A stretch of DNA of 63,195 nt, the filler included, from Squatina squatina (lineage: Eukaryota): NCBI GenBank assembly GCA_031763465.1. It is 4 parts of 4 records of this genome, joined end to end, with 100 filler letters (N's around TTAATTAATTAA, not from the genome) between each part and the next. Parts side by side here need not be neighbours in the genome. Positions count along the whole stretch, not along the records: positions 1 to 20,539 come from JARFOE010000219.1; 3 more parts are not named here. One strand, written 5' to 3'. The notes under the pieces were generated by a model, which ran no database searches, was not told where the DNA came from, and saw nothing but the letters and a program-made list of their open reading frames with translations. Position numbers and translations under genes: made by a program. This document shows, piece after piece, positions 7,351-20,539 of this stretch; position 1 is the stretch's first letter; each line of letters begins with the position of its first letter.

Positions 7351-7534
7351 AAAGGGAGATTGTTGGTAGNNNNNNNNNNNNNNNNNNNNNNNNNNNNNNN
7401 NNNNNNNNNNNNNNNNNNNNNNNNNNNNNNNNNNNNNNNNNNNNNNNNNNNNNNNNNNNNNNNNNNNNNGAACAGGAAATAATAATCAGGCATTTGTGTA
7501 ATTAGCACTGACTTCATCTGTATTCTTTCTACAG

Positions 7535-7674
7535 CTCCACCAACTGTAAGCATCATGCATTCTGGCCAAGCTTGTAACATAGAGGAAGAACGATATACGG
7601 AGCGAGTGTACACAATTCGGGAAGGAGAAACCTTGGAGCTAACCTGCCTTGTTAGAGGTCACCCTCGGCCACAG
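7535..7674 (+). CDS. MDGA2: MDGA2 coding exon, N-terminal half of Ig1
   Basis: tttctacag acceptor and gtgaat donor; 140 nt encoding (A)PPTVSIMHSGQACNIEEERYTERVYTIREGETLELTCLVRGHPRPQ. The CNIEEERY and ETLELTC motifs match MDGA2 rather than MDGA1. Confidence 0.96.
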
Positions 7675-7814
7675 GTGAATCCAAAATCCCACATTTCCTA
7701 GCAAAGTTACCAATGTGCTTGCTTAGTTTTGTTACGTGGTTATTTGATTAAATAATCTTATTTCTGGCAATGAATAGTTAAAAGATGAAAATATTCTTTG
7801 CATATAACATTCAA

Positions 7815-9544: not shown

Positions 9545-9719
9545 ATCAGATGGACCAAAACAGCAGGAAGTGCCTCTGACAGATTCCACGATAATAGTGT
9601 CTTCAATGAGACTTTGAGGATCACAAGAATCCAACGCCACCAGGGAGGCCGCTACTACTGCAAGGCTGACAATGGCTTGAGCACCCCTGCAATCAAGTCC
9701 ATCAGAGTTGACGTTTACT
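9545..9719 (+). CDS. MDGA2: MDGA2 coding exon, C-terminal half of Ig1
   Basis: ttag acceptor and gtaagt donor; 175 nt encoding IRWTKTAGSASDRFHDNSVFNETLRITRIQRHQGGRYYCKADNGLSTPAIKSIRVDVY; in frame with the previous exon (phase 0). Confidence 0.96.
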
Positions 9720-11904: not shown

Positions 11905-12479
11905 CAACAACAACAACTTGCATATATATAGCGCCTTTAATGTAATAAAATGTCCCAAGACGCTTCACAGGAGTATTATCAAACAAAATTTGACACCAAG
12001 TCACCTAAGGAGATATTAGGGCAGATGACCAGAAGCTTGGTCAAAGGTTTTAAAGAGCATCTTAAAGGAGGAAAGTGAAATGGAGAGGAGGAGAGGTTTA
12101 GGGAGAGAATTCCAGAGATTAGGGCCTTGGCAGCTGAAGGTACGGCCGCCAGTGGTGTCATGAATAATATCGAGGATGCCAGAATTGCAGGAATGTAGAT
12201 ATCTTGGAGGGTTGTTGGGCTGGAGGAGGTTACAGAGATAGTAAGGGCTGAGGCCATGAAGGGATTTGAAAACAAGAATGATAATTTTAAAACTGAGGCG
12301 TTGCTCAACCAGGAACCAATGTAGGTCAGCAAGCGCAGGGATAATAGGTGAACAGGATTTGGTACGAGTTAGGATTTGGGCAGCAGAGTTTTGAATGAGC
12401 TTAAGTTTATGGAACGCGGAAGATGGAGTTTGGGCAGGAGTGTGTTGGAATAGTCAATTCTAGAGGTAACACAGGCATG
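11905..12479 (-). mobile_element. L2-clade LINE 3' fragment
   Basis: Minus strand reads HACVTSRIDYSNTLL (L2 ORF2 motif HAFVTSRLDYCNSLL) and ends at the (CAA)n-CTTGCATATATATAGCGCCTTT tail. Confidence 0.75.
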
Positions 12480-15400
12480 NNNNNNNNNNNNNNNNNNNNN
12501 NNNNNNNNNNNNNNNNNNNNNNNNNNNNNNNNNNNNNNNNNNNNNNNNNNNNNNNNNNNNNNNNNNNNNNNNNNNNNNNCAGTCAGTCTCATTGTAAATC
12601 AGCTGCAATATAGGTCTTGGTATTTTGCACATGGGCAACCTGCCATACAATGCTGCCTCCTAATATATACTAATTAAATTCATACAAATTATATTATGAA
12701 TGAAAATAGTGTACAATGGAAGTCCTGGGGCACCGCTTTCAATGGCAGGTGAAAATTAAGTATTTCAAGGTTCTAATTCTTTGTCATTTTGTTTTCTTTT
12801 TATATTATAAAATTCAAATGTCAAAGCTCTTTGCATTTTCTACTAAAATTCTGCTTCACTTTGGAATTGGTTTCATTACAGCAAGACGATAGACAACAAA
12901 TTTACCTGAAAGATGCATTTCATTCATAAGCAGATCTTTACCCCACCCCCGCCATTTATTTCTGTGGCACTAACTTCATGACCAAGCTGTGTCACTAATA
13001 GAGGACATTTGTTTTCCAACCGCAGTATGCTCAAGTGATCCAAGATTAATGCATCCATTTTGACCCATGGCCTGTCCACTTAATTATACATTGACAAATG
13101 CCTCAGATTGTGTTAACGGCCTGTAGCAGGTGAACATGGGACAGGTCAGCTCTCTTCAGAATCTGTAGAGTTACAGCTATAGGATTTTTCTAATCTGTGT
13201 TCAACTGCCACTAGCTATTGAAGTCACTTCACTAAAAAAAATGGGCAGTCAGTTATGCCAACTTGACCATCTGAAAAGATGTGACTGAAGAGTGGCTTAT
13301 TGTCGTGTTAACAAATTACGTGTTGTAATATGCTATTGATTTTGGGGGATGTACTATGAACCTTTNNNNNNNNNNNNNNNNNNNNNNNNNNNNNNNNNNN
13401 NNNNNNNNNNNNNNNNNNNCATTGCTCATCTGGATTTTAGTTATTATTGATTCAAAGAAAGGTCCCGTCACTTTAATTTAGTGAAAACTTCTGCACCCAG
13501 AATTGCAACAGCCAAATTCCTCAAACATGCTCCAACTGTTGGCCTTGTGCTTCTACTCCCAATTTAAAAAAACATCTGCACCCAGAAGTCACTTTGTCTA
13601 CTAAATTTAATTTGCAGTTCAGACTGTGCAGTTCTGCTTACTGCAGAATAAATAATATGGCAAATTGGATTAACGTACAATCACGTTTGTTTTGTTTTGA
13701 TAGTCGAATGAACATTTTTTTAAAAATGCAAAATTGTTGCGATTAAGAATTCAGTGCTTTCCGTTGAAAAATTACCTGGAGCTACATTAGCCAAAGTGGA
13801 GAGAAAATTCCTAGCCTGACAACTTAATTAAATATGAGATTGCAAACCCTTGCAGGCCTCATTTTCTCTTTGAATGAAATATTCAATTGTTCATTCTAAA
13901 AATTGATTTCTTACTCGATGTTGCTAAGAATGAAATATTTTAAAATTGGAATTAACTGTTATGTTGGAGCAACATTCCTACATTTTCAAAATGTCTTCCA
14001 AGCCTAACACTGTTGGTCTTAACACTGTTCTCNNNNNNNNNNNNNNNNNNNNNNNNNNNNNNNNNNNNNNNNNNNNNNNNNNNNNNNNNNNNNNNNNNNN
14101 NNNNNNNNNNNNNNNNNNNNNNNNNNNNNNNNATAATTAGGCTCAACTTATTGGGAAGTAGAACCTTGGATTTGCATATAATATACAGTCAGATTTGAAT
14201 TCTCTTTGAAATTTGGACTTCATCTTGTGCATGTCCTACTCTACACAGAATTCTCAGTGGAGAAAATCTATTTGTAAATTAAGTAGTTCAAGCGGGGAAA
14301 TAATAGATGTGTTGTTATACAAACAATCCAACTTAATGCACTGTGACGAGTCCAGCTCCTGTCCTGCTCAATCATGAGGGAATCCGTTGTGTGTCATGTC
14401 TCTGCAGATGTCCTGTGCTCAGTTAACTGGGGCCCTCAGATAGATGAGCATTGGCTCAATATTTTCACTGCAGAGACATTGAATACAAATTGCGCAGTAA
14501 TCCAGTTACATTGAAGTCTACAAACTGGAAGACAAGTACATTGAAAGATACATGAAGTCAGTGCTCCAGGTAATTGGCAGTTACAGAATCTAATGGCATG
14601 TAAGAAGAGTGGAAATGCAGCATCTTAACTGACAGTAGCCAGTTTGGTGGTACTGATTAGATAGCTGGCACAGCATCTGAGATTAGTGTCCCTCTGTAAG
14701 AATAACATACTGGATAAAGACACATTGAGAGCTTTCATTTTAAGATTAAATGCTTAAGTTCAAGAAAATATTTATTTTGACTTTTGACGGGGACTGCCTT
14801 CTATTCGCTGTTCACACGGTGTTTCCAGCATTCCCATAAAATTATTTTTAATTAATGCAAACTGAAGTGAAGGGAAAAAGTAAAGCAACATCGGAAAATA
14901 AAGCAGAAAGGTTGTAAATGGCATGAAGCAAGTGAGGGAGGAACAGAAATACACACGTTTCGCTCTAGATTAGTCAGTACATTTCTGACGAGTTAAAAGC
15001 TCTTCCTGGGACCTGCTGTTCCTACAGTTAGGTCATAATGAAAACAATGCTGGTATGCAATTGTTTAAAAGCTCAGCCATGTTTTTGACACCAGGTAAGC
15101 TGGCTTTGGAGTCTTATTAGGATTGGATCCGACACTGAAACCAAGGCTTGTTTTTCTTTCATTTAAATTCTTTGTGCAGTCTGCTTTAATCAAGATCAGC
15201 GTTTCAGATTACAATGATAATCGTTCTTACAGTAGCCGGAATCTGTACACTGGGCATAGAGAGGACACAATTAAAATCAGTGCTCGTCGTAAATCAGGGC
15301 TTTTACAGAACTATGATTGTGAGTTGTAACATCAGTAGATTTGACAAAAATCTCCACAACCTTTTTAGAACTTTTGTTGCTGCAAAATTGCTTGTACCCA

Positions 15401-15766
15401 AGCAACAGATAAAATGAAATGAGAATTGCTTTTGCTTCTGACACCTGCTATTTGCGTAACCATGGTAATCATCTTGAGATGGTCATGTATTAATTCGAAT
15501 GAAAGCGATCAATTGATGTACAGCACAGTTGGGGTGACACCTGCTACATTGAGGTATTAGAATCGTTGCAGTCTTTGGTACCTTAAGAAATGCTGTTAAC
15601 TGTAAAATGCTAAAAATGTAACTACTGTATTATGTTACCTGTCTGCTGAAAAAGTGCAAATATCCCAACGAGTAAATCCTGAAACTGAAGGATTGTGAAC
15701 TGCATTCGTTATATGTTCAGCAGCGGTATGCAGTGGTGTCATGAGACATAAAAATTAAACACTCAC

Positions 15767-15950
15767 CATTTCCAGACCGTTTTCCTGAGCGGTTCAGACA
15801 GACCGAGTATAAGGCATTTGCCAGATCGCCTCCACAATAGCGTTCTGTGCCCCGCTTCTGTACCGGCTGCTCTACTGTGTTTTGACCTGAGGTCATGTTT
15901 ACAGACAGTGTGAGGAGCAGGACAACCACGATGGCGCGGGCCTGTACCAT
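15767..15950 (-). CDS. Insulin/IGF/relaxin-superfamily prepropeptide, exon for signal peptide + propeptide + B-chain (A-chain exon not found)
   Basis: Acceptor tatttgttccctgtctacag directly before ATG; donor G|gtgagt (phase 1); 184 nt open. MVQARAIVVVLLLTLSVNMTSG-QNTVEQPVQ-KR-GTERYCGGDLANALYSVCLNRS-GKR-SGN: hydrophobic signal, B-chain signature CG-x2-L-x2-AL-x2-VC with C-x11-C spacing, dibasic sites on both sides. Confidence 0.88.
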
Positions 15951-17859
15951 CTGTAGACAGGGAACAAATAACATTTTACAATCCAATTCTGATTCCCCAT
16001 TGACAAGTTTGATATCAAAATCAACAAACCGTATATAATATACATGCGTAACTAAGGCCCACTTCTACTGAAAGTAGAGCAAATATCAATAAACATAAAT
16101 NNNNNNNNNNNNNNNNNNNNNNNNNNNNNNNNNNNNNNNNNNNNNNNNNNNNNNNNNNNNNNNNNNNNNNNNNNNNNNNNNNNNNNNNNNNNNNNNNNNN
16201 TGGCTAATTGGAGGGTTGAAGGAAAATTTTCAAAGAGTCCCATTTCCAGCGCGAAATTCAGCGCTTAGCGCTAGAAATGTCCAAACACGAATTGGCCGCC
16301 CTTGGCGTTTGTTTCCGTGCAGCAGGTGCCTTGGGTGCGCACTGGTGAGGTGGTTTTATCTGAAGCTGAAGTCAGCTCAATTGCTTGCTGGCTGGGCAAT
16401 GCTAGGCTGGCTTCAGGCTACACTTAGCTCCACTTGTTCCCTCTTCATTCGCAGATTGATCCACTATGGCTCCGGCAATCCCATTTTCTTTTTACTCCTG
16501 ACCTCGCTAATAAACATTTGGCTTTTAAATCTCCTTGAATAAACTTTATTAATCAAATATTATGAAAATCCAGCTAATAAGCCAGCACTGAACAGCTGCA
16601 GTTTCTCAGAGTCCATGGGTCAACAAGTGTGGACCCCTATGCAAGTGCAAAGTTCTTAACGCTGGTTCTGTTAGTTAAGTGATGTAACAATATTATAAAT
16701 GATGGATGAAATTAGGACAACTTAATTGCACTAATTGCTTTATTTAACACGAGCCTAGTGCCTTCATCTTTACTAGGTAGATGAATCCATGTAGGTATAT
16801 TGAATGGAGTTGACCTGTTTTGCTGGATGCTCTCAGAGGGCTACTACACAGCTGTAATTTGTTTTCTGTTTGCACAAGTGGATGGATGTGATTCTGTTTC
16901 GGAGCATACAACAGATGTTGTGATTATGCAAGCACAAACAAAGCGCATCTGCTATTTATTACATACAGTGGTCAGAATGGGCGCGTTCAGTGGAGGGACC
17001 ATTGCAAAGCAGGAGTGACCCTGGGAACTATTTACCTCCGAATTGGTCCTGAGCAATAAAGTTTACCTCAAAGATCGCATATTATTTTATTGCAACTGAT
17101 TCAGAGCACTTAGTTTGGTGAGTTTAAATCTGTATTTGGAATTCTGATTTAGAAAGGTGATGGGTTTGCAGTCAAGTTGGCAGTCCTAATTTTAGTGATC
17201 GTGTTAGACTATGTGTGAGTNNNNNNNNNNNNNNNNNNNNNNNNNNNNNNNNNNNNNNNNNNNNNNNNNNNNNNNNNNNNNNNNNNNNNNNNNNNNNNNN
17301 NNNNNNNNNNNNNNNNNNNNGTTACTGCAGTTCATCTTTAACAAAATCCTACCATACGACACCATGGGCAATTGTTTGAAAGTCTTTCTTTTTATTGGTC
17401 CCTGCTCCTCCCAAGAAGAACTCTTATCACAACTATGACTGTAAGACTTAATTTTTCTTACTTCTTCTCTTGCCTTAAAAATTAAATTGATAGATTTCAG
17501 TGTTGGATCATTATGTTGCATATGTGCAAAATGTGCTACCAATTCATTAATGAATGACTCTTATTGGTAGTGTCTCAGAAGAAATTAAGGGTGAGTGAAA
17601 GCTCTTCAGCAAACCAAAGTTCATCCCACTAATAAACAAACTCCTCCAGTCAACATCCAACTGAGCCTTGCATACTCTTAAAGTGATATGTCTCTGCTAC
17701 CTACCCGAGATGTTTATCATCCTCTGATAGATTTATGTTTTGCTGGTTTATACTTATGACCTCAGGTCTGACAAGTGTGTCTTACTCTGAAGCAATAATC
17801 TGCTTTTATCTGAGCCATTTAACATTTTATATGCCTCAATAAGTTCCCATTTAATTAAT

Positions 17860-18295: not shown

Positions 18296-20242
18296 AGTGA
18301 CAAGTTGAATTTTAATCCTACTGGGCAAAATGTTGGGGTGGGTCCCATGGATCAGAGTTAGGACCTTTGTTGCTCATTCACATTTTTGTATCATCTATAC
18401 AGTTGACAATCTTGCATTTGATTTCAGTATCCAGAGGAAGAACAGAGGTCCAATATGACCTTGTGGGTAATAAATCCGACCTATCCAACTACAGGATTAT
18501 TAGCCTCACTTCAATAGCAGGCAACATATTGAGAACAGAGACACCACTCAACACTTCCCCCAGTTCAATGTTACATTACCACTAATACTCTATTAGCTGT
18601 TCTTTGACCAGTGTCAAATCCATTCCCATATCCTCCCTTGACTTCCTATAGCTTTCCAGTTTAATTAGATGTTTTTCACATGGAACTTTTGGCAAAGGTC
18701 TTCTGAAAGTCCAAATAATGTATCGTATGCAATCCCAATATTGTTTTAAACAAAGAAAAACCCCCTGTAAATCTGAAACAAGCCTCCTGGGAACGGGTTG
18801 GCTGCCTGCCCCCCATCCCGCCTCCGTTAAAGCCGGAATTGGGCAACTTGCAGGCAGGTTGGGATTGGGATTCAGTTTCTTAACACTTCAGCCTCCCTCA
18901 CGACCCTAATCCANNNNNNNNNNNNNNNNNNNNNNNNNNNNNNNNNNNNNNNNNNNNNNNNNNNNNNNNNNNNNNNNNNNNNNNNNNNNNNNNNNNNNNN
19001 NNNNNNNNNNNNNGAAAGGAATAGAGGGTTATGCTGATAGAGTTAGATGAGGAAGAATGGAAGGAGGCTCGATTGGAGCATAAACATTGATATGGACTGG
19101 TTGGGCCATATGGCCTGTTTCTATGTCCTTTATTCTATGTAGTTCTACGAAGTGCAGAATGGAAAACTTTCCCCTTGGTTCAACTTATGATTTTTTTCAG
19201 GAAACAGAGAGTCAATAATGAGTGTAGGTTTTTCTGAAACTTTATTTAACTTCTTGATGCTAACATGCCCAAAGTTTAAGGCTGTTCAAATATATTTATT
19301 ATATTCTAGCAATATTATTATATTATTGTAGCAAATTTTTACCAGTCCCCAATCAGACCAAAGGATGGAAGTGCACCATAAAGATTTAATTCAGTGGAGG
19401 GAACATTGGCACAGTTTGTCTCAGCTCAGTTAACCCCTCTTTCCATCAGCTAACAGTGGCACACTGTTGATATAGGTCAGGAAGAAATTGCCAGCCCAGC
19501 CCAGCCCTGTCCAGATCATCATACTTCCACCAGACAGAGGAGGGTGATTGGTGCCTAGTTGATTGCAAGGACAGCTGCTTAGGACCTGTTTTTTTTTGGT
19601 GCATGCCAACACCACCCTGCTGGAACTCCACCCCGAAGGGAATCCACCAAACTATGTCATCAGGTTGNNNNNNNNNNNNNNNNNNNNNNNNNNNNNNNNN
19701 NNNNNNNNNNNNNNNNNNNNNNNNNNNNNNNNNNNNNNNNNNNNNNNNNNNNNNNNNNNNNNNNNNNTGTTTTGTGCTCACATTGAAGTACTGTTTCAGA
19801 AGTAGTAACAGCTCTTGTTCCAGTGGTTATTCTTCCTGCGTGAGGCTAAACAATTAGTATCAGTACCTGGTGTGACGATGAGAAACATCATCCTCGATTT
19901 ACAATCTTGTTGCACTTGTTGAAATCAGCTAGCTCAGCACAAACCAACGAATGAACCTGGATGTTCCTGATCTTCACAGCTCAGTACCATATGGTGTTGT
20001 TACATTTAATAAATTAAATATTGATCAGCCCTGCAATTTAAATCCATGTACTGATGAGGAATGCATACCTGTCTAATATGCGTAGGTGACCCAGTGGCTT
20101 ACTCTGGACATTACCACTTATGTCATTCACACACATTAGACAAGAATATTCCCTTCATCAGACTGCGTGGGATATCTGTTTCATTCTTACTGTGATTTAG
20201 GCAATAAAATCTATTGAACATCAGCTCTTCTCTTTATCCTAG

Positions 20243-20539
20243 CGCTGAAAAAGGGACGTTTTTGGATTACACCAGATCCATACCATGATGATGACAATAT
20301 TCAGATTGGCCGTGAGGTCAAGATTTCCTGTCAGGTAGAGGCCATTCCGCCAGATGAGTTGGCATTCTCTTGGTTCAAGAATGGACGCCCACTTCGGAGC
20401 TCGGAAAGAATGGTTATCTCCACAACAGATCCTGATGTCTCACCGGGCACAACCAGTCTGGACATCATTGACCTGAGGTTCACAGATTTTGGGACGTACA
20501 CTTGTGTAGCATCTCTAAATAGTCAGGTTGTCCCTGACA
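20243..20539 (+). CDS. MDGA2: MDGA2 coding exon, Ig4 (3' end cut by scaffold end)
   Basis: tttatcctag acceptor; (A)LKKGRFWITPDPYHDDDNIQIGREVKISCQVEAIPPDELAFSWFKNGRPLRSSERMVISTTDPDVSPGTTSLDIIDLRFTDFGTYTCVASL. Exons for Ig2-Ig3 are not visible and presumably lie in gaps. Confidence 0.96.

Follow-up and report, generated by a model that had tools for sequence, protein, structure and literature searches.

A candidate insulin-superfamily gene nested antisense in an MDGA-like intron of Squatina squatina

Does the genome of Squatina squatina hold an insulin-like gene distinct from those named in vertebrates, or a copied exon which makes no hormone? The question is raised by a stretch of 63,195 nucleotides (nt), filler included, of assembly GCA_031763465.1 (hereafter the window, meaning the whole stretch analysed), whose positions 1 to 20,539 come from record JARFOE010000219.1. 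A first-pass annotation of this DNA had proposed at 15767-15950 an intact exon coding for a signal peptide and an insulin-superfamily B chain. These coordinates prove exact, the gene being on the minus strand, and both parts of the encoded peptide are borne out by hydropathy, by matches in Pfam and PDB, and by two related proteins, P0002 and P0004. On balance we lean towards reading 15950..15767 as the opening coding exon of a real, unannotated and undescribed gene of the insulin superfamily, which lies antisense within an intron of an MDGA-like gene.

The exon and its two relatives

Read on the minus strand, the exon opens at an ATG (15950-15948) and ends in phase 1, its last codons ...TCT GGA AAT being followed by a single G and then by the donor gtgagt. 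Its 184 nt translate as MVQARAIVVVLLLTLSVNMTSGQNTVEQPVQKRGTERYCGGDLANALYSVCLNRSGKRSGN, which includes the B chain quoted in the first-pass annotation. The N-terminus M-V-Q-A-R precedes a hydrophobic core of 12 residues after Arg5, where Kyte-Doolittle means over nine residues reach 3.5 within residues 4-15; by hydropathy only, this is the profile of a signal peptide. Cleavage is likely in the region NMTSG, after Gly22, as judged from the small residues at -3 and -1. Next comes an N-terminal propeptide whose motif EQxVxKR is common to the exon, P0002 and P0004 (E27, Q28, V30, K32 and R33 are invariant in the alignments), and then the B chain. The latter shows the spacing Cys-x11-Cys with a Gly directly after the first Cys, encloses GGDLANALYSV between its cysteines and ends with LNRS, four residues past the second Cys; the insulin-superfamily B-chain motif is there, C39-G40...V50-C51 with L43, L47, Y48 and V50. 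The NRS of the tail is also an N-glycosylation sequon. A Gly-Lys-Arg site follows, whose Gly could give the B chain a C-terminal amide, and the exon closes with SGN plus one base of the next codon, for Gly.

The phase-1 donor claimed by the first-pass annotation is present as a consensus sequence, its boundary being kept in P0002. Of the acceptor that it placed directly before the ATG, the pyrimidine tract and the AG are present, while their use is unproven. A TATA-like element further upstream would allow another reading, a true first exon with a short 5' untranslated region and not an internal exon using an acceptor.

Scanning the exon with the Pfam Insulin model (PF00049), as the first-pass annotation had proposed, aligns residues 37-54 with profile positions 2-19 of 81 (18 bits, E 0.0058). 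The structures point the same way: each of the 21 PDB matches of the exon peptide at E<=10 is a B chain, whether from insulin, proinsulin or an insulin analogue, the best at E 0.084.

The relatives come from a phmmer search of the exon peptide against 1.84 billion representative proteins, which returned four matches at E<=0.001, two of them judged true relatives. The two others, P0001 (1189 residues, 12 stretches) and P0003 (842 residues, 4 stretches), are tandem-repeat proteins with summed scores and no insulin-type cysteine pattern, and were set aside as unrelated. P0002 (218 residues, E 2.2e-7) aligns with the exon over its full length (1-61 to 1-60, 53% identity) and continues past the donor (..KRSGNGE..), reading KRSGNGEWIIFF where the stretch of Squatina squatina gives KRSGNGECLIFM. 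Since P0002 runs through the same donor, it is the counterpart of this exon in another genome, predicted with no splicing, and the exon boundary is conserved. The intron read-through of P0002 remains open for about 155 codons and contains, at residues ~95-170, repeated units of the SWIPSDP/SWIQADP type, which suggests a short tandem DNA repeat in the intron of that species.

P0004, a precursor of 108 residues (E 6.8e-4), agrees with the exon from the last part of the signal region through the propeptide (EQtVdKRG) to the B chain (YCGarLAdvLdlVC..r.GKRS); the residues invariant in the alignments are E, Q, V, K, R, Y, C, G, L, V, C, K, R and S. It then goes on, via a connecting peptide and ..TKR, to a canonical A chain, SGIVEECCLNPCSLSTLAKYCW (GIVEECC..C........C), and terminates Cys-Trp, one residue past the last Cys. 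With the Pfam Insulin model P0004 reaches 55 bits (E 1.6e-14). Its closest solved structures are insulin (3.1e-5), IGF-I (9e-5) and IGF-II (1e-4), and further matches include the A chains of bombyxin-II (5.2e-4), DILP5 (1.8e-3) and Con-Ins G1a (0.023). An AlphaFold2 single-sequence model of P0004 (mean predicted local distance difference test score 51.8) was too poor for a fold search. Taken back to the window by tblastn, P0002 and P0004 find this exon alone (E 2.4e-16 and 7e-11, the runners-up being at 0.68 and 1.4).

Each of the two relatives is a singleton, their ENA contigs measuring 17,389 and 853 nt, and wider searches did not enlarge the family. A homologue search with the exon peptide as query gave no candidate, one with P0004 gave P0004 itself only, of 2 candidates, and one with a family alignment gave P0004 only, of 171. 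None of the 472 pattern matches in metagenome contigs, nor of the 27 in viral contigs, was confirmed as a related locus, and a back-translated DNA pattern that recovers the window exon had no match in metagenome contigs; NCBIfam returned nothing. ESM Atlas provided leads only. For the exon peptide the best cluster (0.89) is a 64-residue 'hypothetical protein' of Chordata with 57 members, 23% of them with Pfam Insulin; it could consist of ordinary insulin B-chain exons and is not counted toward copy number. For P0004 the best cluster is an insulin-family one of 116 residues (0.91). Judged on sequence, the exon belongs to a subfamily of the insulin superfamily that has not been described, apparently a small one found at more than one locus.

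If the gene is expressed, its product can be pictured after established prohormone processing. The precursor would enter the secretory pathway, signal peptidase cutting near Gly22; prohormone convertases would cut after KR33, KR58 and a further KR ahead of the A chain, such as P0004 has, and so remove the N-terminal propeptide and the connecting peptide. A carboxypeptidase and an amidating enzyme could then turn ..LNRS-G into an amidated B chain of 22 residues, the amide coming from Gly56. The A chain would be encoded by a second exon outside the assembled window and joined to the B chain by disulfides, two inter-chain bonds and one within the A chain giving a small two-chain peptide. This peptide would probably be monomeric: without the aromatic segment B24-B26, no insulin-like dimerisation is expected.

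Table 1. Coordinates of the insulin-like exon, of its parts and signals, and of the neighbouring MDGA-like exons
Feature	Coordinates	Strand	Basis or remark
Coding exon, 61 codons + 1 base	15767..15950	minus	184 nt; signal peptide, propeptide, B chain, GKR, C-peptide start
Predicted signal peptide, residues 1-22, MVQARAIVVVLLLTLSVNMTSG	15885..15950	minus	hydropathy; 13/22 identical in P0002
N-terminal propeptide QNTVEQPVQKR, dibasic KR at its end	15852..15884	minus	alignments with P0002 and P0004
B chain GTERYCGGDLANALYSVCLNRS, 22 residues (start RYCGGDLANALYSVC)	15786..15851	minus	Pfam match to residues 37-54; insulin B-chain alignment
Gly-Lys-Arg dibasic site	15777..15785	minus	sequence; GKR in P0004 too, KKR in P0002
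Splice donor gtgagt (consensus GTRAGT) after the last exon G	15761..15766	minus	sequence; boundary conserved in P0002
Putative acceptor, pyrimidine tract + AG, tgttatttgttccctgtctacag, ending ctacag, adjoining the ATG	15951..15973	minus	sequence
TATA-like tatattatata, 82-92 nt upstream of the ATG	16032..16042	minus	sequence
MDGA-like exon, first half of Ig (immunoglobulin) domain 1	7534..7680	plus	PDB MDGA1, E 2e-20, chain residues 5-53
MDGA-like exon, second half of Ig domain 1	9545..9718	plus	PDB MDGA1, E 5.4e-30, chain residues 55-112
MDGA-like exon, Ig domain 4, reaching the edge of the piece	20230..20538	plus	PDB MDGA1, E 3.1e-36, chain residues 306-408

A gene or a copied exon

The alternative that survives best, although we think it somewhat unlikely, is that of an orphan copy: the first exon of an insulin-like gene, together with part of the promoter and the beginning of the intron, would have been spread by segmental duplication or transposon capture, and no hormone would be made from the copy sitting in the MDGA intron. 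It draws on several observations which weigh against a complete gene at this place and which we bring together here.

Most of them come from one public run, X1, whose kind and baseline depth are not on record and which contains 0.19 of 47 sampled words. It was compared at 85% likeness with the contig bearing the exon (14133-16100, 1968 bases), a comparison in which holes prove nothing and depth is no copy number. All 39 matching contigs fall in bins 15651-16100, and none on the adjoining 14133-15650. The match thus comprises the exon, some 80-115 nt of the intron that follows and at least 150 nt of upstream sequence; the repeated stretch corresponds to no tRNA or Rfam family. Likeness to the window ranges from 85 to 100% (8 contigs at 99% or more, 14 at 95-99%, 14 at 90-95% and 3 under 90%), at per-contig depths of 44-582. 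There are at least three versions of the exon plus flanks, three different contigs spanning 15688-15769 and three others 15885/15909-15986, which means that there is more than one locus or that the sample was pooled. Likeness between the copies and the window is lost at 15986, which lies 36 nt upstream of the ATG, and loose ends point both ways there; the pattern suggests either that two independently repeated modules adjoin at this position or that the copies differ by an insertion or deletion. No loose end falls at 15767 or 15951, so splicing is not shown by the run, and flank depth equals exon depth, hence X1 behaves like DNA. The copy in the window could be one of several dispersed exon-bearing fragments.

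The A chain is the second difficulty. The first-pass annotation had made the lack of an A-chain exon in complete shark genomes a point against its proposal, and within the window pattern scans and tblastn found none: the strict pattern CC-x3-C-x8-C has no match on either strand in six frames, the loose pattern is as common as chance (present in 27% of 300 shuffles), and tblastn of P0004 residues 51-108 gives nothing better than E 1.4. One loose candidate on the minus strand, at 10016-9975 (CC-x3-C-x7-C), was rejected: its spacing is wrong, no dibasic site is present, and its 20-residue tail carries an odd Cys. With an A chain seen in P0004 and not in the window, the copy may not be a complete gene. 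The claim of an undescribed gene holds in so far as no named protein matches the exon and no description exists in the literature that was found, and falls short on the A-chain exon. The sequence available downstream of the donor amounts to 14,792 assembled bases with 12 gaps (the window has 16 runs of N, 1374 N in total). The assembled sequence also lacks the exons for MDGA Ig domains 2 and 3, whose place would be between 9724 and 20218. Either exons are hidden in the gaps or the scaffold is incomplete, and the argument from the absence of an A-chain exon is weakened accordingly.

Three further points belong on the same side. The exon alone stays under the Pfam Insulin cutoff, 18 versus 23 bits, because it holds half a domain, the B-chain half. 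Its relatives are two among about 15 billion proteins, neither of them a named protein. Finally, the contig 14133-16100 is linked to the contigs with the MDGA-like exons across N gaps only. A copied exon would moreover agree with an antisense intronic location in an unrelated gene, which has no known synteny with insulin-family loci.

Against a mere copy speaks the state of the exon, which is intact with its ATG, both cysteines, both KR sites and a consensus donor. Its base composition does so too: GC is 0.54 and the observed/expected ratio of CpG 0.75 (10 CpG), kept amid CpG-depleted DNA, the rest of the 1968-base contig having 0.38 and 0.41 (26 CpG). No internal, terminal or tandem repeat is detectable in the window, and X1, its kind and baseline depth not being on record, does not establish a copy number.

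The distribution of changes argues in the same direction. Between the window and P0002, identity is 13/22 in the signal peptide, 7/11 in the propeptide and 5/6 at the junction of GKR and C-peptide, as against 7/21 in the B chain, whereas neutral decay would not concentrate divergence there; with P0004 it is 5/11 in the propeptide and 10/22 in the B chain. In X1 the summed depth falls over the B-chain bin 15783-15848, to 330 versus 1616-2223 in neighbouring bins. In all three sequences the frame stays open and the two cysteines, the Gly next to the first Cys and the two dibasic sites are retained; at about 50% divergence, this argues for selection. A conserved processing scaffold with a variable mature peptide, together with the dip in X1 depth, would fit a selected, fast-evolving family of secreted peptides better than neutral decay, on evidence that is thin. 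The faster divergence of the B chain than of the signal peptide and propeptide, and the presence of at least three versions in X1, point to a fast-evolving multi-locus family rather than to a conserved old hormone. So rapid a change of the mature peptide tells somewhat against the possibly ancient paralogue, retained in cartilaginous fish, that the first-pass annotation had proposed.

Relation to the known insulin superfamily

If the exon is the beginning of a gene, it could still be a divergent orthologue of a named one, INS, IGF1/2/3, RLN1-3 or INSL3-6. We consider this very unlikely and already disfavoured, although peptides of the insulin family change quickly and are difficult to place and although the top PDB matches of both the exon and P0004 are insulin and IGF. 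The first-pass annotation had set the B chain apart from insulin, IGF and relaxin/INSL, and the defining features agree with it: there is no RxxxRxxI, no FFY tail at B24-B26 and a dibasic site directly after the B chain. No named or annotated protein among about 15 billion matches the exon, and none is named at E<=0.001 in the 1.84 billion of the phmmer search.

Insulin itself is the nearest in layout, with the succession signal peptide, B chain, dibasic site, connecting peptide, dibasic site and A chain, the last parts being taken from P0004. The B-chain core C-G-x2-L-x2-A-L-Y-x-V-C-x2-R is common to both, and the P0004 A chain, GIVEECC..CSL..L..YC, aligns along its length with human insulin (E 3.1e-5). 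INS has a phase-1 intron just after the B chain, where the exon has its consensus phase-1 donor. The differences are several. The B chain of the exon stops at the position of B23, four residues past the second Cys, and passes to GKR without the GFFYTPK tail, so that no B23-B26 GFFY is found; it has Tyr where insulin has Leu before the first Cys; and its mature region is fast-evolving. It is preceded by a propeptide of 11 residues with its own KR, a feature not known from any of the INS, IGF, RLN and INSL precursors. Finally its neighbours are MDGA-like exons, and not TH/IGF2, as for INS, nor JAK2 or JAK3.

With IGFs the likeness lies in the A domain of P0004, which aligns to IGF-I and IGF-II (E 9e-5 to 1e-4). 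The IGF layout, a single uncleaved chain with D and E extensions, is not found: GKR follows the B chain of the exon, and in P0004 dibasic sites lie on both sides of the connecting peptide, a KR preceding the A chain, with no D or E domain. Relaxin and INSL peptides are two-chain hormones of insulin fold, as the product of the exon would be, which evolve fast and have a phase-1 intron in the connecting peptide. They differ by the C-terminal Trp of their B chain, which the exon B chain does not have, and the relaxin receptor-binding motif RxxxRxxI/V is absent between its cysteines, where there is no Arg. No relaxin or INSL chain occurs among the 21 PDB matches of the exon, nor among the 60 listed for P0004. 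As insulin and IGF are the best structural matches of P0004 and none of those 60 is a relaxin or INSL, the family is nearer to the insulin/IGF side.

Invertebrate insulin-like peptides (bombyxin, those of locust and Drosophila) have B chains in the style YCG..LA..L..VC with a short C-terminus and form multi-gene families, and the P0004 A chain does match bombyxin-II (E 5.2e-4) and DILP5 (E 1.8e-3). The host DNA of the exon is vertebrate, however, and insulin and IGF outscore bombyxin for P0004. Cone-snail venom insulin, a monomeric insulin with a truncated B chain lacking the C-terminal aromatic segment for dimerisation, would be a functional analogy only: the likeness is in chain length, signal and propeptide are unrelated, and there is no sign of a venom role.

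As far as their accessible text goes, reviews of the vertebrate insulin superfamily count INS, IGFs, relaxins and INSL3-6, nothing further (PMC12702675, PMC8051583). Neither they nor, in its accessible part, a 2025 phylogenetic survey (PMC12796670) mention a gene like this one; supplementary files might list shark insulin-like sequences. A literature search, which included the peptide motifs, found no description of such a gene.

Host locus and meaning of the gene

The exons that surround the insulin-like exon (Table 1) come from a gene of the MDGA type, presumably a MAM-domain glycosylphosphatidylinositol-anchored Ig protein. They were identified by comparison with MDGA1 structures alone, which does not tell MDGA1 and MDGA2 apart, and stand in correct order and strand. 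The window has a GC content of 0.406, a CpG observed/expected ratio of 0.37 and an excess of TG/CA. By this sequence context, the insulin-like exon appears to lie antisense within an intron of the MDGA-like gene, in vertebrate DNA.

This context bears on contamination, which the first-pass annotation had named as a risk: the contig would come from a parasite, a prey or another non-vertebrate and have been mis-scaffolded. The B chain YCGxxLAxxL..VC and the A chain GIVEECCL.PCS of P0004 do resemble invertebrate peptides, with bombyxin-II at E 5e-4, and the contig is joined to its neighbours through N gaps. Yet the contig without the exon has the vertebrate-type CpG depletion of the window (GC 0.38 and ratio 0.41, versus 0.406 and 0.37), it lies between MDGA-like exons of the same scaffold in the right order and strand, and insulin and IGF beat bombyxin for P0004. 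With MDGA-like flanks and CpG depletion, contamination is therefore unlikely, and we regard it as highly improbable. A chance open reading frame (ORF) resembling an insulin B chain has next to no probability left and is already refuted, for although C[GS]-x10-C occurs 7 times in the six-frame translation, the relatives at E 2.2e-7 and 6.8e-4 in the library of 1.84 billion span signal peptide, propeptide, B chain and donor, and the back-translated pattern of shared residues matches once in the window and in 0 of 100 shuffles.

Elsewhere in the window, an ORF at 12019-12453, with a related piece at 12580-12650, both on the minus strand, reads ..LIQNSAAQILTRTKS..LWNSLPKPL..SSFKMLFKT... The ORF looks like an interspersed repeat, perhaps one common in shark genomes. 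The most GC-rich stretch is 1400-2950 (GC 0.45-0.49 versus ~0.37 elsewhere), with overlapping long ORFs on both strands; situated upstream of the MDGA-like exons, it could be a CpG-island-like promoter region or a repeat.

Beyond a single undescribed gene, we put forward as a speculation, itself improbable, that a jawed vertebrate has an unseen multi-locus insulin-like family with conserved signal peptide, propeptide and intron borders and a fast-diversifying, short and possibly amidated B chain. Such a family would have arisen within the insulin/IGF branch as a lineage-specific offshoot, and its relationship to receptors would be a new one. Its mode of diversification, a part of the same speculation and to be given no more credit, would be that of toxins, antimicrobial peptides or pheromones, and not that of a metabolic hormone.

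Should the exon be an orphan copy after all, it would exemplify the duplication of an exon with its promoter into the intron of another gene. If on the contrary the gene is real, as we lean to think, vertebrates would have a further ligand of the insulin superfamily, set apart by its N-terminal propeptide, by a B chain cut short at B23 and by having the receptor-binding signature of neither insulin nor relaxin. A naturally truncated, probably monomeric insulin-like peptide would be of interest to insulin engineering, and the gene would bear on the diversification of the insulin/IGF branch after the vertebrate genome duplications.

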